From contig NC_086381.1 in assembly GCF_036588685.1 (NCBI RefSeq), forward strand, positions 73,098,001-73,162,000: a DNA stretch of 64,000 bases, read 5' to 3'. The notes below the pieces were generated by a model, which had not been told where the DNA came from, searched no databases, and saw nothing but the letters and a program-made list of their open reading frames with translations. This DNA is from Mytilus trossulus. Taxonomy: Eukaryota. Positions within the stretch are counted from its first letter, which is position 1; each line of letters opens with the position of its first letter. The position numbers and the translations under genes are program-made. This document shows, piece after piece, positions 895 to 63,500 of the stretch.

Positions 895-1700
895 GAAGAA
901 AAAGTAAAACCACAAAAATACTGACTTTCGAGGAAAATTAAAGATCGGAAAATCCGTGATCAAATGGCAAAATCAATAACTCAAACACATCAAACGAATG
1001 GATAACAACTGTCATAATCCTATGGTGGCCGGATGCAGCCATTTCCCCTTTTCGTGTTTTTGCATTTTCTTCTACCACTTTTCCAACGCGAGATCGGAAA
1101 ATCGAGAAAGCGAAAAATCGGGAAATTGGGAAATTGGGAAATCGGAAACTCGAAAAATCAAGAAAACATAAATGCGAAATCGAGAAACTAATTTTGCGTT
1201 TACGCGCTTTCGCGTTTTTGATTTCTTGTGTTCTCGATTTCTCGATTTCTCGATTTCTCAATTTCCCGTCGATTCCCCTTTTTCCCGATTTCCCAATTTC
1301 ACGATTTTTTTATTTCTAGATTTCGCTTTTTTGCTATCTCGATTTCCCGATTTCGCGTTTGCAAATTGAAAGGAGAAAACACGAAAACGCGATAAGGCGA
1401 AATGGCCACATCCGGCCACCAGATATTCCTGACTTGGTACTGGCATTTTCTTATGTAGAAAAGGGTGTTTTAAACCTGGTTATATGGCCAGCTAAACCTC
1501 TCATTTGTATGACAGTCACATCAAATTCCATTACATTGACAATGATGTGTAAGATATAATAGGTAAAAATGTCAAAAATGGGGGTACAGCAGTAAACTTC
1601 GTGCTATAATCTTTATCACTATAAAATAAAATCTATGTAAACAAGAAACACAAAAAGACAGAGAGACAAAGCACATCAGCAAGAATGAAATAACAAATAT
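895..1700 (-). repeat. Dispersed repeat family C (interrupted by the 1021-1422 MITE); further copies ~1720-1875 and ~10050-10330
   Basis: Shared blocks ccgaggaaaattc, aatcaaatggcaaaatc and cctgacttggtac recur in both orientations. Confidence 0.7.
1021..1422. mobile_element. Foldback-type MITE with terminal inverted repeats and inverted arrays of ~8-bp units
   Basis: TGGTGGCCGGATG...CATCCGGCCACCA termini; A-rich (CGAGAAAT-like)n left half mirrored by a T-rich right half; approximate 6-7 bp target duplication ataatcc/atattcc; splits a host repeat. Confidence 0.8.
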
Positions 1701-4219: not shown

Positions 4220-4720
4220 ATAAAGGCAACAGTAGTATACCGGTGTTTAAAAGTTTAAAAAAAAACAATGAGAGAAAACTAATCCGGGTTACAAACTAAA
4301 ACCGAGGGAAACACATTAACTTTTTAAAAGGAAAACAAAGAACCAACAGGAATACAGAAGTGCAACAAAAAAAAAACACCAATATAAACAAAACGAACTA
4401 TTAAATAACAACTGTTATATTCCTGACTTGGACAATTTAAGAAAAAAATATGGGATGAACCTTGTTTATTAGCTAGCTTTATAACAATGTTAAAACATAT
4501 CGCGGAAATGGCAACACTACGTGACAGAAATATAGTCCAAACAAACGCAAGAGCATTCATCCCAGAAATACAGAAACAAATAATATCACAGTCGACACAA
4601 CATGCAAACTGCAGAACAACAACAAACATATTAATTAACGACACACACCGCAGAATATACAAAACAGTCGCGCGCTTACGTAACAAACATGCAATTTCGA
4701 ACTTTATTTAATTATTTTCA
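4220..4720. repeat. Dispersed repeat family B; other copies ~9895-10020 and ~15330-15548
   Basis: Shared head taaaggcaacagtagtataccg...gttacaaactaaaac(c/t)gagggaa in three places. Confidence 0.7.
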
Positions 4721-9300: not shown

Positions 9301-12300
9301 GAAAACAAATTCGTCTTGTCTAATTCTTTTTTTTTTTATCAATTGTTTTAAATGATAGACTTGCTTATGTGTTCTAAATGCATTTCGTTACTTGATAACC
9401 CTAGTTTAAGGTCAGTTCGTTCAGATTTAGATCATTTAATCTGATGCCCCATGTAAAGAGATTGCCAGGATCTTTGCACGTTGGGAACATTGCATCGACT
9501 GTTTGAGGGGTTGGTATGTTGACTGTTGCATGGCAAAACACCTTTCATTATCCTATAACACTCATTTTCCGATTGCCGTCCTTATATATATAGAAGTGTC
9601 TACCTTTGTGTTTATTGTTGATTAGTTTTCGTTTTGAACTTGTATAAAATATTTTTCCCTCGACGTAAAGCAACAAAAATCACTCAATATTATCTTATCA
9701 GTTCCATTAATCAATTAACTAATTCAAGGTAAATCATAAAATTGTACACAATTTTTTATTGTAGAAGACAATTTCAAGACCACTGTCAATTCTGTTTTTT
9801 ATTGTTTAAATTTGAATAGCTATAGTTTCTCGCAGTTTAAATTTCATAATAAGTTGCAACTTCATAACAAGAATAGGAGCATAGACAGCGTAAATAAAGG
9901 CAACAGTAGTATACCGCTGTTCGAAATTCATAAATCAATTGAGAAAAAAGCAAATCTGGGTTACAAACTAAAACTGAGGGAAACACATCAAATATAAGAG
10001 GAGAACTACTACACAACAGGCGTTGCTAATGGGCTTTATATATATGCCTTTTTGTGTTAACTTTTGTACCCCTAATTTTGACCTTTTTACTTATCATGTC
10101 TGTTTGTTTTGTTAACACACCGTTGTCAATATAAATAAACGTTATGCAACTGTCATACAAGTGAGAGGTTTATCTGGCTATAAAACCAAGATTAATCTGC
10201 CATCTTCAATTGAAAATGTCTGTACCAATTCAGGATGGTGACAGTTGTAGTCCATCCGTTTGATATGTTTTATCATTTGATTTTGCGATTTGATTAGACT
10301 TTCCGTTTTGAATTTTCCTCACAGTTCGGGTTTTTTTCCATTTATGCATGCATCACCCATAAACTTAAACCAAACTATCGTCTTTTGCTTTATTTTATTG
10401 TACACAATCGTATAAACAACACAACGTTTTCCTTTAAGTCATGCGTTGGTGTTCATTCTTTGCAAATGAGAAAGATTTTTTTTTTTCTTATAGCATTTCC
10501 TTTAAAATATTTTTTTTATATAATTGATTAATTGACTGTTCAGATATAATCTTGTATATGGCTAATAACATTTTCTTTCTTTCATTCCCTTTCCTTTTTT
10601 ATCTCTGAAATTTATTTATTTTCCGTTTTAGATATTTCTGAATCAAATATTAGACAAAATAGTAAATGAATAAGTATATTGTATGGCTATTGATTTCTTA
10701 TACTGTGAGCATACAGTGTCGTGAACATGACTGTCTGAAAATATCACTCCTACCATTTCTTTTTCATTGAACGATCTGCGAAAATTTCTAAGTAATGTAA
10801 TTAATTTGCATATTTTGGATATTCTTGTGTACTATTATTTGTCTGTTTGTCTTTTTCATCTTAAGGCATGGCGTTGTTAGTTTACTTTCGATTTATGAGT
10901 TTGTCGTTCCTCTTGTATCTTTTGCCCCTCTTTTAATATCATAGCTAATACATAGTTATCTTCTGTTCCATTTTCACCAATAAATGTACTATATGATTAA
11001 CTAATATGCTTACCCTTGAACAGAGAAGTACAAATAGTCGTATAAGTAATAAGGTAAGTCATTCCATGCATTGGTCGTAACATATGTTGGGGAGAACCAG
11101 TCAGTGTTACTGGTTCCTGGTGGAATGTCAAACCGCATTTCAACAACTGGTAAGCTATTTGTATGGATAACTATGTTAACCTTAAATAAATTCTTATTAA
11201 TACATGTTATTGGTAGAAAAAATAAAACAATGACCGTCATTGAAACTGTGTAAATATGATAATTTAAAAGTGAAATAAGCCGACTCTAAGTTACCGACGT
11301 TCAACTCTCGTCAAGCGATTAGGGAAAGTAAAAACTGAGAAAATCGCAATAAATAATGAGGAGAAAGATTTTTCAAACCAACAAAAGTTAAGCAATAGTT
11401 AGTTAACAATCAACAAAAGATAACATATAGTTAGTTTAAAACAAAAAAGTTTTACAAAAAGATAGTTTACAACCAACCAACAGAGGTAGTGTCAATTTCA
11501 CTTTGTATGTATTTCACTCGCAGGAATCGAATCCTACATAACATTTAATATTAAAGATAACAGGATTTGAATTATACTTTAATAAATTCATCGTAGATAC
11601 CAGGAAGGATTTGAATTATACTTAATTGATTGTTTCCTAATTTAACATATTTCTATAAAACCATGATATTATTCAGAGCTTCATATTGCTATGGAAGGAA
11701 TTACATGTGGATAGTGCATGTTTTTGTTAAAATTTGCATTAAAGAACGTCGGTTATCAATATAAAAATAAATTTGTATCCGAAAGAACACATATACCGGG
11801 TATCTTAACTTCCAACGTATGTTTTGTTTTGGTTAATGATGGCCTTCTTATACATTTTAAAGATTGGTGTATCAGGCTTTCGTGTGGTGTACACAAGTTG
11901 CTGATCTGTTTTGAAATAAGCAAATGCTATGAATTTAAATAGAGATTGAAAGACATTATGACAATTGTATGAAACAATTTCACTGCATATTGACCCTACT
12001 TCTTTTTTAATGTTTGCAATCACCTACATTAAGGAGAGGGCAATAACTTTTTTTTTATTATACTTCATGTCAAAAATGACAGATTTTGATTGGCTAATAC
12101 GAGGGTGTTACCATTCATGGAAACGCTTGATCAAGTGTGTGGTTTATTAAGTACGACTCTATCCTATGACAAATACTAGTACTCTCTTTCCTTTCACGGA
12201 GACGCTTGAAGTTTGCGCCTCAGTTGACAATATTTTCTCGGGGTAACAATCTGCTCTATCATCCTCTCAGAAATGTGTTATTTGTATAATGTTAACCTGT

Positions 12301-15276: not shown

Positions 15277-16489
15277 TTACGTTGACTATCACTACAGTAT
15301 AACTACTAGTATTAATCAAAGTTCATTTGATAAAGCCAACTGTAATATACCGCTCTTCATAAGTCATAAATCGATTGAGAGCAAACAAATCCGTGTTACA
15401 AACTAAAACCGAGGGAAGTACATCAACTGTAAGATGAAAACAATAGACAAACAGAACCATTGAAGTGCAACTAAACCTAACGTCAACATACATAGAAACT
15501 TACTATTTGATTACAATTAACTGCCATTTCCTGACTTGGAACAGGACAAATAGAATTGCAAAAAACGTTGAGACATGTACGGTAACAGAATGTTTGAACA
15601 ATTAAAATTGCTACTTTTTTAAATGTCAATCGAGTGTATTGCGTCACATTATTTGTGTAATATCAAGTAATCGGACTTTTTTATTTAAGGAATGACTGTA
15701 TTTTTTCTGTCTATGAAGAAATAACATAAAAAAAACACTGAATAAACCGCGTAAGTTATGACAAGTTCCCATTAAACAATTCACCACAATTTCTTGCAAG
15801 TTGGCGTTAACAGATTTGATTCCGATTGGTAGTCTCAATAAACTGCTTCGCTGAACGCAGCTGGATATGCCCGCAGAGGTTCGACCGTGAACAGTTGGGG
15901 CTAAAATAGACACATTATTGAAGCTTGATACAGGTCTGAATTTGGATTCTAATTAGATATTTGACATTTTGTAGGTTTCTGAATAAATGAAGTCAACGAA
16001 CTTGAAATAGTTATTATTAATTGAATTTATTTTCAATTAAAGATTTCTTGCTGTTGTGCAACACACTGTGCTGTTGTGTAATACACTGTGCTGTTGTGCA
16101 ATACTTAGTTAATATGTTGTCAGACTATAAACAAATAAAGTTATAATCATCAATGTCATATTAGAAATTTATGAAAATCAAAAAGGAGCTAAAAATTATA
16201 TCAATGGATATAAACAATTCACCAAAGTTTCATTATAATTGCTAACAGTATTTATGAGTTATGGTCCGAAAATTGGAAAATCCCCCCTTTTTTAATGAAT
16301 AAAATCCCAAAAAAAACGTAAAATCAAAAATTTATTAAAAAAAACGAAAGGGAGCTGACGTCCATATATATAAATAATTCACCATAGTTTATGCAAATTT
16401 GTTAAAGCGTTTTTGAACTAATCTCCGACAACTTGGCGGCAGACGGACAGACGGACAACGGTATTCAATCATTCGTCACGTTAATGCGC

Positions 16490-18496: not shown

Positions 18497-18542
18497 ACGC
18501 CAGACGCGCGTTTCGTCTACATAAAAGACTAATCAGTGACGC
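18497..18542 (-). ncRNA. Minimal type-I hammerhead ribozyme, core variant CUGAUUA (probably inactive)
   Basis: GCGTCA-CTGATTA-GTCT(tttatgt)AGAC-GAAACGCGCGTC-TGGCGT with palindromic stem III. Confidence 0.7.
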
Positions 18543-22900: not shown

Positions 22901-23320
22901 AATGGTGTGCTGATATGCCACTGCCCCTGATACACTACTGCATAAAGTTAATGTTGTGATGATACACCACAGTCCCAGATTAACGAGGTTGTGATGTTTC
23001 ACTACTGCCCTATGTTAATAATGTGATGATACACCACTTCCCCTGTCACAATACTGCCGAAGGTTAATGTTGTGATATTCAACAATGTTCCAGGGTAAGG
23101 CGGTTGTACTGATACACTATTATCCTATATAAATGGTGTGCTGATATGCCACTGCCCCTGATACACTACTGCCCAAAGTAAATGTTGTGATATTCAACAT
23201 TGTTCCAGGTTAAGGAGATTAAGCGGATACACTACTGTCCCATTTCAATGTTGTGTTGATACACCACTGTCCTATGCTTATACTGTGCTGATAAATCGCT
23301 GTCCCATGCTCAAGGGGTTG
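20000..23320. repeat. Satellite array: ~32-bp monomers organised as a 231-bp higher-order repeat (~11-12 copies) with diverged monomeric flanks
   Basis: Marker cactactgccctatg at 20691, 20921, 21152, 21383, 21614, 21845, 22076, 22307 ... 23000 (spacing 230-231). Confidence 0.95.
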
Positions 23321-24853
23321 TTTGGTCATAAACATATTTAAACCAACACATTTTTTTTAGGTCAATCCCAAATCGGGAACCTGCAATACAGTGGCTTAAG
23401 ATAGTTGCTGTTTGTTGTTATTTTTTTCCATCAGAAAGCAGTCCGATTGTTGTCTCTTTCTTTTTAGGAAAGTCTCTTATGCACCACATGAAGGGGACAA
23501 TCAAAACCTCTCCTCAGGGACAATATTGTATGGTATCATGTAACAGTTAAATTTAAGAGGACATATAATGAAGGCCATTTGTTGAGCCGAAATATTTGCA
23601 ATTATTGTATAATTTATATCATCTGCATGTTCAGTTTTTCAATCTTTGTGCGATGATATGCAACACTTTTTAGTGTTTTGTTTTCCATCTATTTATCGGT
23701 ATTGTTACACAATCTTTCAGACTCATAAAATAGATTATTGCTCATTAGTAAACATAATATGGAAGCTTAAGGCCCCGAGATTATTTTTATATATAAGCCT
23801 CTGTCGAGGTTTGTGAATTATATATAAGTCTGTTGGTCTCACGTGGTTGGTCTATCATCGACAATTTGGCTGCGTTAAACACAAGACCGTATGTATATGT
23901 AGTACATGTATGTATAAAATTATTCACAAGTGTACTGTTTGAAAGCCAGGAGAAGACTGCCAAAGCAACATTTTACAAAACATACATTAATTTAAAGTTA
24001 AGGGTATTAAATCATTATATAAAAGGTTCTCATAAAATGTATATCACTGTCCAATCTTATGTAATAATCATCGGATTATTGTCCTCCGATTAAACTTAGT
24101 TAAAAAAGAATAGCGGGTGCTCGAGCGGGTGTCTTCAATTTGATTATTAAGCCAAATATTTCATGATTATTTGATTACCTAGGACTGTATTTTTAGTTTA
24201 TGATTATTTGATTACTAAAGATAAGCAAATATTTAATGATTATGTGATTATATTGGCCAAAAAATGGTGATTATGTGATTACTAGGACCCCCCATGAGGG
24301 GCCTCATATATATTCAACCTATGTCTACAAACAAAATACAATAGGCGTTGTTATATCAATGTCAACACCTCTATTTCCCCTATCATTTCATTGAAAAATG
24401 GTCCCTTTTACATACCTGTTTAAAAGTAAATTTTTGAGCTTAAATGGTCCGTGACCCCCTTTTCAAAACGAGAGTTCATACACATATTCAATTAAAACTA
24501 GAGTTCATATAAAGCACTTTGCAAATTATAGTAAAAGTTCCCATAAATGTCACTTTTCTTCGGGTGTTCCGGCCAAATATCTCTAATATATAAAGCTTAC
24601 TTGCGTGAAAACAAAAATTTGTAAATATACTGAATACTCTCGAGTGAATACTATACTGAGTGCTCTATTTTAAAATTAAAGTTTGCATCTGGCTTACTAA
24701 ATCATGTGTGAACGTTTACGTGAAAGTTTACTGATGACTTAAAAACTTTCAAGTTGATACATGTCATTTTCTTAAGATGTGTACAAACATGACTAATAAA
24801 TACAGGTGTGTTTTCTTTAGTGAACTTTGAACTAGATGAATTATACTTCGAAA

Positions 24854-31197: not shown

Positions 31198-31495
31198 TAA
31201 AATTTAGATTGGAAATGGGGAATGTGTCAAAGAGGCAACAACCCAAACCGAAGAAAAAAAACCAACAGCAGAAGGTCACTAACAGGTCTTCAATGTAGTG
31301 AAAAATTCCCGCACCAGGAGGCGTCCTTCAGCTGGCCCCTAAACAAACATATACTAGTTCAGTAATAATGAACGCCATACTAATTTCCAAATTGTACACA
31401 AGAAACCAAAATTAAAATAATACAAGACTAACAAAGGCCAGAGGCTCCTGACTTGGGACAGGCAAAAAAATGTGGCGGGGCTGTCTTAACATGTT
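31198..31495 (-). repeat. Dispersed repeat family D; other copies ~36975-37310 and ~51368-51700
   Basis: Shared ggaaatggggaatgtgtcaaag...gtcttcaatgtag...ccttcagctggcccct...caagactaaca. Confidence 0.8.
31436..31480 (-). ncRNA. 3' half of a twister-like ribozyme (family D)
   Basis: CCCC-GCC-ACATTTTTTT-GCCTG-TCCCAAGT-CAGGA-G-CCTCTGGCC. Confidence 0.6.
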
Positions 31496-31524
31496 TATAC
31501 ATGTAACATATTAAAACTAAACAA

Positions 31525-32820
31525 TAGATATAGGAAGATGTGGTGTGAGTGCCAATGAGACAACTCTCCATCCAAATAACAATTTAAAAATTAAACCATT
31601 ATAGGTTAAAGTACGGCCTTCAACACGGAGCCTTGGCTCACACCGAACAACAAGCTATAAAGGGCCCCAAAATTACTAGTGTAAAACCATTCAAACGGGA
31701 AAACCAACGGTCTAATCTATATAAACAAAACGAGAAACGAGAAACACGTATATATTACATAAACAAACGACAACTACTGTACATCAGATTCCTGACTTAG
31801 GCAATTGCAAATATTTGCAGCGGGATTAAACGTTTTAATGGGCCCAAACCTTCTCCCTTTTTCTGAAACAATAGCATAACATCACAACATATAAAAACAT
31901 ACGATAAAATATCAATTAGCAGACTTAACTCAATCAAAAAACGTATGATTACACAAAGAACGAATAAATTTGATCTGCGATATCTGAATACAAATGCACA
32001 GTTAATTAAATATTAGAGACAAACAGTCATGACCAAAAGGCTATCAAACAATTTCAAACACACTGAGAAATATTTAACCAATCAATGTTCACTTTAGAAA
32101 AAAACCGGTTTTTTATAATCTTGAAGTTTATACAAATGTTGTAAGAATAAGTGAAAAATTGAAGATATTACAAATAATCAAAGCTGGTATACAGCCAAGA
32201 TCCATATAATTAAAAATGACAAAAAAGCATTATAAACAGTATCAACAGGTCGAATTAACAAGAAAATACGATTTGAGAGTACTCGCAGTTACTGACAGCT
32301 AGTTAAAAGCCAAAACCAATTAATAGTAAAAAATCATGCATCAGAGACTAAAATCGACTAAAACACATCACAGGGATTTAGTATTTTAACGTCATTTATA
32401 GTCAAAGAAGACATGACTTGTGCAATGCCAAAAATAAATGTATCGACAGGTAGTAGTATAGTGAAGAGCGACTTCTATAGAAATGAAAGTTAACGTGGCT
32501 GTGTCCCCTATACATCTCGCCTCAAAAGATAATGAAATTTAGTTATGTTTTAATTTGCTAATGACAAAATCAATATTAGTGCCAATGTGAACTATATTCA
32601 GAGATCTAATTACAATATTGGTACGATAACCCTTACTTATAAGTTTGTTTAAAGGTTCGATGAGTTTACAAGGATCACATAGTGATTTCCTCGCTTTAAG
32701 TACAATATTACCATAAAATTTAGGATGAGAAATACCATTTTTAATAAGCTTTCTACAGGTATAGCCAAATTTACTAATCAAATCTTTGTATCTATGAAAG
32801 AATTTAGTAAAAGTTTTAAG
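31525..32820 (-). mobile_element. 5'-truncated retroelement, probably Penelope-like: C-terminal end of the RT ORF plus ~1 kb of 3' region (family A)
   Basis: ORF remnant LKTFTKFFHRYKDLISKF...GISHPKFYGN...KGY at 32820-32539 resembles the post-RT region of molluscan Penelope-like elements. Its distal end (gaagatgtgg...gccaatgagacaactc) recurs at ~1-50, 5760-5950, 8500, 18970, 25230, 40810, 44200, 58250, 61925. Confidence 0.65.
31774..31874 (-). ncRNA. Twister-like ribozyme, type P5, in the 3' region of the Penelope-like element (P4 5' strand damaged)
   Basis: TCAGA-AAAA-GGGA-GAAGG-...-TAA-TCCC-GCT-GCAAA(TA)TTTGC-A-ATTG-CCTAAGT-CAGGA-A-TCTGA. Confidence 0.6.
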
Positions 32821-33540
32821 TATATGTCTGTTACTGAAAAAAATCCATTTTACTCTCTAACATTATTACAATGTATACTATCATAATAAAAAATTTGCAT
32901 GCGGCACCCTAATAAATGTTATTTCACCTATTCAAAGATAAGATGTTACATAATTATAAATTAAACTATCAAAACTAAAGATCTCTTTCTTCAAGTCTTG
33001 TTTGTCATGAGAATTTTAGTATTATATATATTTATCAGTCTAATAATAAATAGGGATGAGCACAATAACAATTTTGTTTTAAATTAATTATTCTTAGGTC
33101 AGTGATACTGTTGGCTTTTTTCAAAACTACCCTTTCCCCTTTTTATTGGGAAAATATGCATAATTTTTATCAAATTGGGAAAATAAACCATGAATTTGAT
33201 AGGAGCTTCAATTTACAGACCCCCTTTCAAGAGGTAAACCCTCATTTATAATAAGACCCCTTATTGTCAGTGATGATACATAAATAGACTGAAATCTGCA
33301 CATATAGTCATTGTAGGCATGAAAAATGTTTCAATGAGTGTTTTTCAGTTTGTATTTAATGCACAATTACTACTGAGACTGCACTGTTTGGGAAAAGATT
33401 TTATTTTCTGGTAATTTTTAAAAGGCAAACATAATTTATCACTGTTAGGTATGAAAAAAAAAGTTACCTGCTGATAGATGTAGCGTCTCTTTGTTTAAAT
33501 TGAAAATGGCATAATGACTAAAATGATGTCGCAAATCCAT

Positions 33541-36388: not shown

Positions 36389-37487
36389 ATATTCTTAGTA
36401 TACCTGACCCATACCTGTACTTTTTTTATTGCCTCATTTGTGTGTCTATGCTTTTTCTTCAAGCTTCAATTTTGAGATAACATGCTGCTAAGTACTTAGT
36501 TAACAATTCAAATCAGTTCAGATTTCAATACACAACAAATAAATTATTAAAACTTTGCCTACTCCTACTTGATCAAGTATTAAAGTCTTTGAGCAGAACA
36601 GTCTGTCTGCACAACTTAAAACCATGATTATGATATGACAGATGACTTAAATGTCTAGCAGCAAGTTATATGCTCCTTAGGAACAAGAACAGGCAAATGT
36701 ATACAGTGCATTCACACATCCAAACGGGTTACTTTATAGATTGATAAAATCAAATTTGACCTAAATGAAACAAATTTATTAGATTATATATGATTTTTTG
36801 TATGGCGATTGTTTTTTTTCTACAATGGACTCGTCACCAAACTATGATTGCTAAAAAATCATAAGAGGAGATTGGTTAAAAGTTAGTTATGAATGATGAC
36901 CATTCTTGATTATAACCAAATTAAGAAGCTGGTTAGAATATTATGATTTTTCTGTAAACAATAATAAATTATAAAATAGAGAATGGAAATTGAGAATGTG
37001 TCAAAGGTACAACAACCTTTCAGTAACCAAAGAGTAAAAAACAGGCGACAGCCACCAATGGGTCCTCAACTCTGCGAGAAAATCCTGCATCCAGAAGAGG
37101 ATTCCTTAAAGAAAAAATGTCTACTTGTTCAGTAAAAATGGATGTCATACTTAACTCCTTAACCTATAAATGAACTGAAATTAAAAAATAAATACTTGTT
37201 GTAAGACTAACAAAGGACGGAGGTTCATGACTTGGGTCAGGCGCAAAAAAGTGGCCGGGTTAAACCTCAACTCTTCTTCTATACATTTTTTATAACTCTA
37301 GCTAATGAAGATTATGTTGTGCAAAAAATGGTAATTGTAAATGAAACTCCTTTTTCAGCAGTTCATGTATTTTAAAAATACTCAAATACAATATGTATGT
37401 GTGCACGTGGAACATTGACAAATAAATTTGTTATTATATTATAGTTATTTTAAATTTTCTTTCAGGTAATGAGAATTTTTCAGAACG

Positions 37488-50235: not shown

Positions 50236-51608
50236 CAAAAACTGATGTCCTACAAATAATAATGAATTCAAAGAGACATAACCATCATTGTTTACCATTG
50301 TTCTAAGTATAGAGAAGGAAGAAAATCATTGTCATGATTTCAATAGTGAAATATCCTAAATACTCTCTGCCATGTATGTTGTAGCCATTTTTTCAAAGAC
50401 TCTGAGGTGTTGTGCAAAAAAGAATTCTATGCAAGTTTATATAAACATGTTCAAATCAAAAGTTTGTGAACATCACCAGACAAATTGTCAAATGAATATG
50501 GAGTACGATTTTATTTTTCCTTTACTGTTTTGATCCCTCATTTATTGAAGCACTTATTTGGATTAAATTCATCAACACTTTTCATGGACAAAAGCTAGGT
50601 TTAAAAAAGCCTCACACACACAAAAAACATACTGTCTCTGTTTTATAATTTTTGTCTCTCCTGCAACAAGTTGTTGATGAGAGTGAGACAAAGGAATGCT
50701 AACCTGGCTTCATTTGTTAGAAATTCTCTGTGGTCTTGATGGAGGTTGTCAGTTTGATCACTGGATTGGTTAAACCTAAGACATGAAAATTAATATTTGC
50801 GTCTTTGACTGGTGTGCTCAGAATAAGGTGTATTGGTAGGGTGACACATCTTTCAGCAGACTTAACTAGCACATTAAAAATCCATCTAGGCTTGGTGATC
50901 CAGTTCAAATTAAGGTATATTTCATATCACACCATGCAAGACCCTCATGGGTAGTCCAGCTTATTGAAACATCGTTTTGTTAATATCCTGAATATGCATT
51001 TAATTTCTACTTGATATTAAGGATGTACACCTGAGGAGCATCATTTTCATTAATCTTACTGCTGAAAAAAAATATTGTTTTATTTTTAAATTGAAATTCT
51101 CTCATGATGAGTACATTTTTGTAATAGGATAACTTAATTTGGTATATGAATTCACTGGCACTTGTCTCAGAAAAAATATTTCAGTTATATAAGGGGGGGG
51201 ACAAGTGCCTGTGTATGAATTCCTTGCAATTTTCATGGTTCATTGAACAAACTTTATTTGGTGTATGGAATTATTGTTAATTGTACATGGTTCTTCTATT
51301 AAGTTCTAACTGTGACTTCATTTTTATTTATCATTGATGATGTTATTTATGTGATGCTTGTAAATAATAAAATTGAGAAAGGAAATGCGGAATGTGTCAA
51401 AGCGATAACAACCCTAGAGCAGACAACAGCCGAAGGCCACCAATGGGTCTTCAATGTAGCGAGAAACTCCTGCACCCGGAGGCATCCTTCAGCTGGCCCC
51501 TTAAAAATATGTATACTAGTTCAGTGATAATGGACGTCATACTAAACTTCGAATTATACACAAGAAACTAAAATTAAAAATCAACAAGACTAACATATGA
51601 TATTACTA

Positions 51609-51656
51609 GGTTAAACATGTTTAAGAGATCTCAACCCTCCCCCTATACCTTTAGCC
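51609..51656 (-). ncRNA. 5' half of a twister-like ribozyme (family D, 3' half deleted)
   Basis: GGCTAAAGG-TATA-GGGG-GAGGG-...-TAA-CC. Confidence 0.55.
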
Positions 51657-51789
51657 AATGTAGAAAAGTAAACGCATAACAATACACACATTAAAATTCC
51701 GTATATTACAGACTTCTACATGCTTTCAATTATAAGAACAACAGGCTAGACATTTGTTACAATCTGAATTTCAGATAAACACAGTATTA

Positions 51790-60500: not shown

Positions 60501-63500
60501 TGTAATGCTTATAAAAATAAACTACTCCTACAATCTAAAAATAGATATTATGCTTTTAAATGGCAAAAAAACCCACAATTCCTTGACATGTTTATTTGTT
60601 TTGATCTGTTCATGGAAACTGCTATTGAATTCCTTAGACTAGCAACAGAAAATAAAATGCAATCTAGAATTATCTATGGTCCAATAAAAATGTATGTTTT
60701 GTTTTATGAAACACATTTTTTAGATATCAATGAACTGAATTGAAAATTTAAATTATTGATTATATGATAAAAAAGAAGTTTTTATTGGTGACAAATGTTC
60801 TGCATTAAAAGTTGGGATAATTGTAAAGACAGAGAATACTTGTATCACAGTTGGCCTATTAATTTCATCTGAAATCTAAACAGAGAAAGTCTAATTCTCT
60901 TGAAAAGAATATGGCACAAATAGTAATGTAAGTTGTGCATACTTATCTAATATCAGATATGCAATATAGGATTTCGAAAGGCCCTCAAAACTTGAGATTC
61001 ACAAGGGGTTGCTTTTAAATACCCCACTGAATATAGGTAATGCCCCTATAATTCTAATACTCTTGTTTTGTCTAATATATTTAATATACACGAAACGTAT
61101 ATATGTTTCCAGTATTATCAGTACAATCAGCAAGGGGGTCTCTTTTTTTTTTTATTAAAACTTCATCTTTAAGTTTGTGAAACTGTTAATAAATTGAAAA
61201 AAACATTCAAACAGGGAAACCTGAACAGTCTTATCAATATAAAAATCAAGTAACAAGAAATACTTATGAACTATTATATGTATATGCATTTATGTTTTCA
61301 GCCCCCTCAAGAAGAGTTACAGCAGGAAATTATGGAGAGCCATGGAGGTCACCAACATACAAACAACCTCACATCCCAATACCTCAGCACTACATGACAA
61401 GGCTAGCAGAAAATGCTGCACCTAATGCACCATATGCAGGTTGGTATCTTACATGAGACTGTAATATTTGGTGGCAGTGGTTAATTTATACATGATCTCA
61501 GCTAAAACAAATAAATTTGGTGGCATTTCTGAACAGCACCATTATCCCTTTAAACTTCATATGATTATGTCATTCAGTGTGATATGTTTTCAGTAATATG
61601 ATCTACTTCCTGTATTTCGAAGACATATTTTGGAGTGGTATAACTAGTGAACATTAGCTTTTTTATACTGTTTTTTTTGACAAGTTTCTTGAACAATATA
61701 TGTATACATTTTATACTTGCAGAAAGAAGAAATTACTCGTACATGAATTCTACCTTATTTAACAACACCCCATCAGACAGTCGCTGTACTATCCCTCTTC
61801 CATCTTATGATCCCATGAATGATCCACATCTGCTGGATTACTTTGAAAGAAGATTTGTTAGCGTTCAGAGAACAGCATCGGTAAGAAAAATGTCTATTTA
61901 TTGTCCTATAGAATAGGAAATAGATATAGGAAGATGTGGTATGAGTGCCAATGAGACAAATCTCTATCCAAGTCACAATTTGTAAAAGTAAACCATTATA
62001 GGTCAAAGTACAGTCTTCAACATAGAACCTTGGCTCACACCGAACAGTAAGTTATAAAGGACTACAAAATGATTATTGTAAAACAATTCAAACAGGAAAA
62101 TTATAGATCTAATCTTTATAAGAAACAAGAAACACTTATGAACCACACACACAAACTTTAACCGCTGAACCGGTTCCTGATTTTGGACAGGCACAAACAA
62201 ATGCAGCAGGTTTAAACATTTTGGAAGGTGCCAACATTTACTCAACATGAAACAGTAGTACTTTGGATTCATTTTTTTTTTCTCGTGTGTACCAATTTTC
62301 GTGGATGAAGGAAAACTTGCATTTTTGTGGACATTTAATTTCATTGTTTTGCCAAAGTCTTCATACAACCCATTATAAAAATTAGCCATTCGTTGAACAT
62401 TTAATTTTGTGATTAATTTGTACCCATGAAATCAACGAAAATTGGTATCCAATGAATAATGATGAATCTTCAGTATAACATTACAACATATAAATCCTGT
62501 TTTATTGTTCAAACAACAATTTTATATCAACCTTAAAAGCTTTCTTCATATTTAGAAAACTGTAACTTTCAAATTAGAAGTTAGAGTATCAATTTGTAAT
62601 AGATAAAAAATAAACATAGATTTGGATTTTTCTACAAAGTGTAATGTGCTATAAATCTGGTTTTATATGCTCCGTTACTGAAAATATTATGGGAGACTGT
62701 TGTCCCTCCATTCTTGGTCAGTATGTCAGATAATAACTCAAAAACACTACAAACAATTTGAAACTGTGGTGAATAGTTTATATCTATTGACGCTCCCTTT
62801 TGATTTTTATAATATTTGATTTTATATTTCTGTGTTATGGAATTTTATTCATGAAAAAGGTGATTTTCATTTTTAGAACAATATCTAACAGTGCTTTGAG
62901 CAATTTTCATGAAACTTTGGTGACTAGCTTATATTTATTTAATGTTTATGTGTTGTATCTGTTTAATTATAATTAACTTGTTTAAATGTATAGAGAAATA
63001 TGTGGAACAGACCATCAAGTGCCTCACCTAGTTTACGAACGAGGAGAATTAAAGGACAGGATGACGGAGGGGATAAATCTGTTCTGTATAAAGTTGCTGT
63101 GACAACAGGAGATAAAAAGGGATGTGGGACTGACTCAAAGGTAGATTTATATCCTGTGTATGGAAATTGATAAAAATTAGTGACTGTCAAATCTAAACTT
63201 TAAGGTGGCAACTCTTTAAATACAATACTGTTATTCCTAGTCTTATGCTATACGTTTTAAATGTTAAAAATAAAACATTTCAAATATGTATACATTGACT
63301 GCAATTTCACAACGTTTCCAATGACTGACTGTCAACTGTGGAATTGATGGATGACATCATCCAATCAAAATTGATGTTACATGCATAGTTGTTTAGATAT
63401 AGTAATCACATTATCCATACTTTTATTAGGATTTTTCATGCAGTACAATATTAAACTGTTATTCAGTGTTGGAAGAACAGAGATAAATCACAAGTTAGGA

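Follow-up and report, generated by a model that had tools for sequence, protein, structure and literature searches.

To our knowledge, twister ribozymes have one documented role so far, the 5' processing of RTE-type long interspersed nuclear elements (LINEs) in Schistosoma. Hammerheads in Penelope-like elements (PLEs) and retrozymes were reportedly treated by Lunse et al. in 2017. Twister variants lie at the 5' end of Perere-3, a retrotransposon of the RTE clade without long terminal repeats (LTRs) in Schistosoma mansoni (Liu et al. 2021, PMC8501958; for RTE also PMC7761336), and the published order of parts is P1-UAA-P2-GC-P3-P4-L4-P4'-xUAAA-P2'-GAGGG-P1' (PMC8501958). Hammerheads occur in the pseudo-LTRs of PLEs and in animal retrozymes (Cervera & de la Pena 2014, 2020, PMC7229834; bioRxiv 10.64898/2026.07.22.740005). 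Naiads, a clade of PLEs with DKA and CxC motifs and an N-terminal GIY-YIG, dominate bivalve genomes, have selenocysteine-encoding members and lack canonical hammerheads (Craig et al. 2021, PMC8557442); the word 'twister' is absent from that paper. Here we analysed a stretch of 64,000 nucleotides (nt) of the Mytilus trossulus genome (contig NC_086381.1, positions 73,098,001 to 73,162,000; hereafter the window), in which several repeat families had been predicted to share a twister-like ribozyme of circularly permuted type P5. The predicted fold and its covariation stood, and the supposed unrelatedness of the families did not. We consider it likely that a type-P5 twister-class ribozyme is an ancestral part of the tails of Naiads, present in the window as dead relics.

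The module and its covariation

The starting point of the original prediction, a CCTG...CAGGA motif common to several families, is real and far above chance. With up to two mismatches, CCTGTNNNAAGTCAGGA has 8 matches in the window against 0.32 expected (0 of 100 shuffles reach 8), and AAGTCAGGA has 6 against 0.38 expected. Across the whole 1.3-Gb genome, the exact 17-mer CCTGTNNNAAGTCAGGA occurs 44,758 times, compared with a single match for a reversed control pattern, in line with the high copy number that had been proposed. Furthermore, the composite pattern TAAYCCCGC-N(5-30)-CCTGTCCCAAGTCAGGA has 8,586 exact genomic matches and its control none. The CCTGTNNNAAGTCAGGA motif is probably the P4/L4 hairpin of a circularly permuted (type-P5) twister-class fold.

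The whole fold can be drawn within single intact genomic copies of the repeat families named A, D and G, where the elements follow one another as P5, AAA, P2', GA, the pseudoknot strand, the P1 region, U^AA (the caret marking the predicted cut), P2, GC, P3, P4, L4 (UCCNAAGU), P4', A and P5'. The intact family-D module reads GGCUAGAGG-UAUA-GGGG-GA-GGG-UUGAGAUCUCACAAACAUGUU-UAA-CCCC-GC-CGCAUUUUUGCG-CCUG-UCCCAAGU-CAGG-A-G-CCUCUGGCC, in which UUGAGAUCUCACAAACAUGUU spans 21 nt, and the intact family-A module reads UCAGA-AAAA-GGGA-GA-AGG-UUUGGGCCCAUUAAAACGUU-UAA-UCCC-GC-UGCAAAUAUUUGCA-CCUG-UCCUAAGU-CAGG-A-A-UCUGA, in which UUUGGGCCCAUUAAAACGUU spans 20 nt. The module of family G resembles that of D and differs in P3 and P5. 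On the evidence of these sequences, the module matches the published twister part for part, being open in P5 and closed in P1 and hence of type P5. The anatomy that had been predicted is therefore held entire by individual A and D copies; the family-D model had been joined from two broken loci, but intact genomic D copies (L048-L077) match the composite exactly. A strict descriptor, in which P2, P4 and the L4 pseudoknot had to be free of mismatches, was passed by 60 retrieved genomic copies. Modules measure 85-115 nt, with P5 and P5' about 80 nt apart, and are situated approximately 260-350 nt before the 3' end of Naiad-type elements. Minimum-free-energy folds of A and G copies contain the same helices as the model.

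Covariation was assessed mainly on an alignment (A3) of 13 sequences from seven lineages, comprising at least four from mussel and three from other organisms. Without guidance, RNAalifold predicted P5, P2, P3 and P4 from these sequences, with compensatory changes at 14 of 17 pairs. When a core model including both pseudoknots was imposed on them, 88.7% of cells paired, compared with 75.1% after shuffling and 33-51% when partners were slid by 1-3 columns; as the lineages are few (about seven) and related, such shuffle comparisons overstate significance and are not probabilities. Eleven of the 17 pairs in the core model, including the L4 pseudoknot, changed on both sides, and the covariation score was 0.451 against 0.205. 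A mussel-only alignment of 19 sequences, P5 included, gave 80.5% against 69.9% paired. By helix, the paired cells amounted to 84.6% in P2 (variants CCCC/GGGG, UCCC/GGGA and CCAC/GUGG), 80.8% in P3 and 98.1% in P4 (CCUG/CAGG and ACCG/CGGU). The letters of P3 and P5 are wholly different among lineages, and pairing is always kept; the pair closing P3 co-varies between C-G and U-A, as had been noted.

The pseudoknot between nucleotides 2-4 of L4 and the GAGGG of L1 pairs in 93-95% of cells. The three predicted combinations, CCC:GGG, CCU:AGG and ACC:GGU, were all recovered, together with CUC:GAG in L207, one of the relatives from other organisms described below, and a version with one U.U mismatch in another of them (S2). 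In the second pseudoknot, of two base pairs (bp) between the GC after P2 and the end of L4, the C-G pair is invariant. The other pair is G.U in mussel families A, D and G and A-U in the foreign version S1, a change on one side only; wobbles at this pseudoknot are tolerated in assayed twisters (PMC11662667).

Invariant positions in A3 are A1 and A2 after the cut and the AAGU of L4, while conservation at U(-1) and at both letters of 'GA' is at least 90%, and a further alignment (named A1) gave likewise. In the CHiTA twister survey the same positions proved intolerant to change, and imperfections in P1, P2 and P4 as well as pseudoknot wobbles were tolerated (PMC11662667). All residues reported as catalytic, namely the two A residues after the cut, the G of 'GA' and the AAG in L4, are retained in the alignments. 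S1 has C in place of the A that follows P4. Taken alone, a conserved twister-class fold is in our judgement highly probable.

Naiad elements as carriers

Copies of family A, and likewise of family D, share a single 3' end, while their 5' ends are spread over more than 1.3 kb. Longer copies contain a reverse transcriptase (RT) frame of 462-482 amino acids, present in more than 100 copies at 98-99% identity. The A- and D-type copies share the RT motifs YDFSTLYTTLPH, GIPMGTNCAP and YLDD, preceded by 'FVPADKAANN', a DKA variant of the PLE motif DKG; the Pfam RVT_1 match is weak (E=0.013). A GIY-YIG-like sequence, 'LIYVVT[TGA]TQPKCGIQYVGQTGR', lies about 1.2 kb upstream of DKA in L031, and a CxC motif ('CNC' in D-type, '[TGA]DC' in A-type copies) stands just before 'HVITGDLNIV'. 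Pfam searches of the pieces between TGA codons returned no domain, which leaves GIY-YIG and CxC as motif-level assignments only. From these features, A and D are the 3' ends of 5'-truncated Naiad-type PLEs. Families G, C and E have the module too, and also share neighbouring sequence blocks. The families had been described as unrelated; instead, A and D are both Naiad tails, and the module is inherited.

The open reading frame (ORF) of family A (L031:6069-7800, plus strand; the same frame in L034-L047) contains six in-frame stops, all of them TGA and kept in every copy examined. Two of the six stand where a cysteine would be expected in the GIY-YIG and CxC motifs, and in a second family (L031:3657) TGA occurs at the same place after DKA. 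This pattern suggests a selenocysteine-encoding Naiad in this bivalve. The window copy at 32822-31524 is too truncated to include the TGA-bearing frame. No selenocysteine insertion sequence (SECIS) was detected with Rfam in the 3' untranslated region (UTR) of the mussel Naiads, and no hammerhead was detected with Rfam (E<=1-10) inside the A, D or foreign Naiad copies. More than 40 copies of family D are 100% identical over 223 nt; it is therefore very young.

Two other identities were considered for these repeats. That of short interspersed nuclear elements was dropped, there being no tRNA-like head and the families being truncated long elements. A recognition stem-loop of a LINE 3' tail was superseded by the PLE/Naiad identification, and survives only as part of the non-catalytic alternative weighed below. 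Separately, three 378-nt family-A tails with identical flanks recur with a 576-nt period in L025/L026 (G000:C5:42.92 Mb); this is a local tandem duplication of insertion plus flank, not a head-to-tail array of elements.

An RT profile detected ten Naiad-like loci, at 37-50% amino-acid identity, on contigs that contaminate assemblies labelled bacterial. In three of these loci a SECIS_1 match directly follows the RT ORF with 42-43 bits against a gathering score of 35 (L198:561-623 and 4399-4461; L199:3153-3215; L200:2326-2388), and in a fourth a weaker match (L201:1271-1334, 29 bits) falls below it. The RTs accompanied by the module are at 40-50% amino-acid identity. The SECIS-bearing contigs, from bacterial metagenome-assembled genomes and a Paenibacillus assembly, look like eukaryotic (invertebrate) contamination. 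In L198-L201 the module lies a few hundred nt beyond the SECIS, downstream of the RT, and has other letters in P2, P3, P4 and P5. The version S1 (L198, L199 and L200) reads GUUGCGG-UUA-GUGG-GA-AGG-UGGGCCCGUAAACCGGU-UAA-CCAC-AC-P3-ACCG-UCCUAAGU-CGGU-C-CCGCAAC, and S2 is the version in L201. A more distant relative, L207, has a third version, with a partial RT match about 2.7 kb downstream of it. In L198, two SECIS-plus-module units are 3,838 nt apart, and two RT matches on the single contig of L199/L200 have the same spacing. These are full-length Naiads in tandem, each with the module, an order from which an internal ribozyme could release unit-length RNA.

A metagenome scan for the 17-nt motif returned nearly only chance matches in microbial contigs, and one true twister. 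The latter (L190:2915-2978, minus strand), on a tRNA-bearing metagenome contig, scored 30.5 bits with the twister-P1 model (E=0.0018) and served as a positive control. Its L4, UUGCAAGU, ends in U, paired to the A of 'AC' in L2, so an L4 ending in U is possible in genuine twisters.

Relics in the window

A covariance model made from intact genomic copies (R1) found 12 modules in the window. The interval singled out by the original prediction holds, on the minus strand, two repeat tails end to end, A (32822 to 31524) followed by D (31496 to 31177). The features are as follows.

31524..32822, minus strand: 5'-truncated family-A Naiad copy (C-terminal RT remnant and 3' UTR), 3' end fixed at 31524
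31784..31866, minus strand: family-A twister-like module, type P5 (R1 76.8 bits at 31772-31881)
31866-31862, minus strand: P5 5' strand of the A module, followed by P2' GGGA (31857-31854) and GA plus AGG (31853-31849)
31846-31839, minus strand: palindrome 1 of the A module, followed by palindrome 2 (31835-31828) and U^AA (31828-31826)
31825-31822, minus strand: P2 UCCC of the A module, followed by GC (31821-31820) and the P3 hairpin (31819-31806)
31805-31790, minus strand: P4/L4 of the A module (P4 5' strand mutated), followed by the P5 3' strand (31788-31784)
31826..31828, minus strand: predicted scissile U^AA of the A copy, with the cut expected between 31828 and 31827 by analogy with the twister L1 loop (PMC8501958)
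31177..31496, minus strand: 5'-truncated family-D Naiad tail (R1 27.7 bits at 31429-31518)
31496-31436, minus strand: remainder of the module in the D tail, with palindrome-2 remnant and UAA (31496-31486) and a 5-nt insertion (31485-31481)
31480-31474, minus strand: P2 and GC of the same remainder, followed by a P3 remnant (31473-31463), intact P4/L4 (31462-31446) and the P5 3' strand (31444-31436)
51609..51656, minus strand: family-D module 5' half, with P5 5' strand, GGGG, GAGGG, palindromes and UAA-CC (R1 39.6 bits at 51580-51667)
1409..1525, minus strand: family-C module, L4 UACCAAGU with GAGGU, P5 3' strand lost (R1 53.7 bits)
10140..10253, plus strand: family-C module, decayed, L4 UACCAAUU, P5 ACTGTCA/TGACAGT present (R1 46.1 bits)
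62156..62257, minus strand: family-E module, decayed, L4 UCCAAAAU, a relative of A at 77% identity (R1 35.6 bits)
37207..37295, minus strand: decayed family-D module (R1 15.5 bits)
23289..23396, plus strand: decayed module, absent from the original prediction (R1 27.7 bits)
15511..15598, minus strand: family-B copy with the P4/L4 hairpin (CCTGTTCCAAGTCAGGA) and downstream sequence only, upstream twister parts absent (R1 20.7 bits)
4403..4499, minus strand: family-F copy, a relative of B at 73% identity, hairpin 3' part only (R1 22.6 bits)

The pairings that had been drawn were found in place: TCAGA/TCTGA, GGGA/TCCC and GAAGG in family A (31866-31784, minus strand); GGCTAAAGG, GGGG and GAGGG in the 5' half of D (51656-51609, minus strand) and CCCC, CCTGTCCCAAGTCAGGA and CCTCTGGCC in its 3' half (31480-31436, minus strand); and ACTGTCA/TGACAGT and GAGGT with loop TACC across the family-C loci (10140-10253, plus strand; 1525-1409, minus strand). 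The damage that had been reported for every window copy was likewise evident. The A copy, which has 30 genomic counterparts at 93-99% identity with a common 3' end and varied 5' ends (the longer ones with the RT ORF), has lost the P4 5' strand, with ATTG-CCTAAGT where 45 other copies have CCTG-TCCTAAGT. The D tail next to it is truncated and has the 5-nt insertion, and in the D copy at 51656 an internal deletion has removed the 3' part of P2, P3, P4/L4 and the P5 3' strand. The window copies are dead relics, each with one strand missing or mutated.

Two other features were observed in the window. At 18497-18542 (minus strand), outside the Naiad copies, there is a type-I hammerhead-like sequence, the only such match in the window (Hammerhead_1, 24.6 bits against a gathering score of 34, E of about 0.001 on the local region), with the loop-less CGCG helix III typical of PLE hammerheads and with CUGAUUAG as its core in place of CUGAUGAG; it is probably the dead relic of a canonical PLE or retrozyme. 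At 1093-1315 (both strands), a long imperfect array of GAAAUCG-like units, inverted or tandem, interrupts the family-C copy at 1409-1525. It has sub-threshold matches to several plant microRNA-precursor models, at 49.5 bits against a gathering score of 211; we do not take it for a microRNA, and by appearance it is a satellite or hairpin repeat.

Function and comparison with known systems

Given its retained residues, the module may well be catalytically active, a reading we hold to be likely. Several observations weigh against it, in addition to the small number of related lineages. The Rfam twister models (RF02684, RF03160 and RF02681) gave no match in the whole window at gathering score or E<=10. 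Comparison with the twister-P5 model, which the original prediction had proposed as a check, turned out unfavourably, as none of the models matched at E<=10 on either the near-intact A copy of the window or an intact D copy. Nor did the foreign Naiad loci match at gathering score or E<=10, except for P4/L4 of S1, the best match of all, with 10.5 bits vs 37.6 for gathering (E=5.6). Scoring 79 of 26,711 genome-wide candidates with RF02684 gave none, with the controls silent too, so that this result is uninformative. The printed RF02684 consensus has no P3, which is present in every Naiad-tail copy, and L4, P4 and P1 differ as well; the failure of the models is therefore weak evidence. L4 ends in U where the twister consensus has C. 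The P1 region, 20-21 nt long, offers only a 3-4-bp GUU(U)/(A)AAC helix, 3-5 nt from U^AA. In lineages C and S2, P2 forms only with a bulged C, flanked by a pair that co-varies between U-A and A-U, and no 2-bp pseudoknot is evident; of the predicted family-C fold, the P5 and L4 pairings are thus present, but P2 is bulged and the second pseudoknot unclear. Family C is as abundant as D despite this poor fit, and B and F copies have the hairpin only, the rest of the fold being absent. Lastly, nested pattern counts did not show 5' ends to be enriched at the predicted cut: a D-specific 25-mer extended by 8 nt across the cut kept 85.5% of its matches, and one extended by 8 nt not crossing it kept 73.7%. 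This fits a tandem or circular template and gives no positive support.

The P1 region of every lineage holds two perfect palindromes, each 6-12 nt long; one stands in the P1 loop and the other ends at U(-1). Their position is fixed and their letters vary, and they are always palindromic (e.g., window 31846-31839 and 31835-31828, minus strand). In family A the palindrome is UGGGCCCA in 24 copies and UGGAUCCA in 15, a symmetric double change (GGGCCC / GGAUCC), and other lineages have UGAGAUCUCA, GGGAUCCC, AGCUAGCU, GGCGCC and GGGCCC. As RNA they are too short for self-hairpins, and they cover only about 18 nt of the module. By analogy with the minimal hammerheads of other PLEs, for which it has been reported, they suggest RNA-RNA dimerisation, a conjecture on our part.

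The strongest alternative, which we nevertheless consider unlikely, is a conserved structured RNA of the Naiad 3' UTR that does not cleave, acting in RT recognition, in dimerisation or packaging via the palindromes, or in transcript stability, whether as a twister whose activity was lost or as a mere look-alike. Speaking for it are the failure of the Rfam models, the atypical P1 with its two palindromes that co-vary yet stay palindromic, the survival of P4/L4 alone in B and F, the success of family C with a poor P2 and second pseudoknot, and the lack of excess 5' ends at the predicted cut. Nevertheless, the positions needed for twister catalysis are kept across lineages that share little else, and a protein-binding or dimerising element would have no reason to maintain U^AA, 'GA' and both pseudoknots in twister geometry. 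B and F copies may be mere truncated or decayed relics, and true twisters can do without P1 and tolerate insertions 5' of the cut (PMC11662667).

A role at the DNA level, with the palindromes recognised by, for example, the element's endonuclease or host proteins and RNA pairing incidental, is very improbable. It would account for perfect palindromes that keep their position, not their letters, in every lineage and are too short for RNA hairpins, but compensatory changes join distant, non-palindromic segments (P2:P2', L4:GAGGG and P5:P5'), which only single-strand folding explains, and most of the 85-115-nt module lies outside the palindromes. A chance or low-complexity artefact, pieced together by eye from damaged copies, as the spliced family-D model and the short hand-fitted parts might suggest, is already refuted by the composite pattern with its empty control, the whole fold in single intact copies, the unguided RNAalifold helices and the modules of foreign Naiads.

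If the module is a ribozyme, transcripts through tandem or partly tandem copies (pseudo-LTRs) would cut themselves at the U^AA of each module, releasing unit-length RNA with 5'-OH and 2',3'-cyclic phosphate ends that might then be circularised. The twister would thereby serve Naiads as the hammerhead is proposed to serve other PLEs and retrozymes. More tentatively, and in our view rather doubtful as a whole, Naiads could ancestrally have had a P5-permuted twister in which palindromes replace a weak P1 and two modules cut as a dimer, with the excised unit RNAs circularising and templating tandem insertions; this would be the twister-based counterpart of the hammerhead retrozyme cycle. Should the ribozyme reading be true, Naiads swapped their ribozyme class rather than thriving without one, and tens of thousands of twister copies would be added in a bivalve (going by the exact P4/L4 hairpins). 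The covarying variants of the lineages would also serve structure-function studies as a natural series, and the role of ribozymes in the PLE and retrozyme life cycle could be tested in a second, independent class. Rfam twister models miss the whole Naiad group.

Among known systems, the module is closest to twister type P5 (Roth et al. 2014; RF02684; clan CL00120), with which it shares the arrangement P2'-GA-GGG-[P1]-U^AA-P2-GC-...-P4-L4(UCCCAAGY)-P4'-A, closed by P5. Both of that type's pseudoknots can also be drawn in the module, which has the catalytic A together with the A that follows it, and the general-base G. It departs from that type in having no significant Rfam score, in the final U of L4 (G.U or A-U in the 2-bp pseudoknot), in its P4 (CCUG/CAGG or ACCG/CGGU), in the combination of P3 and P5 with a closed P1, and in the two palindromes and short offset helix of the P1 region; it is known from sequence, with cleavage only predicted. 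It shares the optional P3 of type-P1 twisters. Similar to Perere-3, a twister-class motif with a very similar core (UAA-P2-GC-P3-P4/L4-AAA-P2'-GAGGG) is present in thousands of retrotransposon copies. However, the Perere-3 motif is of type P1, lies at the 5' end and trims upstream RNA, one P1 strand being provided by the target-site duplication, whereas the Naiad module is of type P5, in the 3' region of a Penelope-like element, another class of retroelement. Its cut is internal to the unit, and would thus be sensible only for tandem or pseudo-LTR transcripts.

With the PLE hammerheads the module shares a Penelope-like host, a location in the 3' region or pseudo-LTR, and a proposed unit-length cutting of tandem transcripts with possible circularisation. 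Helix III of the minimal PLE hammerheads is palindromic, and these ribozymes reportedly work as dimers; the Naiad module also has palindromes beside its cut. Unlike the hammerheads, the module belongs to another ribozyme class, with dimer action a conjecture only. In the literature searched, twisters are tied to RTE LINEs (PMC8501958; PMC7761336) and not to PLEs; the CHiTA survey (PMC11662667) mentions bivalve twisters, which could be the Naiad modules. The elements themselves agree with the described Naiad clade in GIY-YIG, CxC, DKA and RT, heavy 5' truncation, tandems, huge bivalve copy number, in-frame UGA and, here in the foreign relatives, a SECIS after the ORF (PMC8557442). On the ribozyme reading, a ribozyme class already known has here a new host element and a new position, in a group reported without a ribozyme. 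The Naiad paper reports none (PMC8557442), and the twister-like module would fill that gap.

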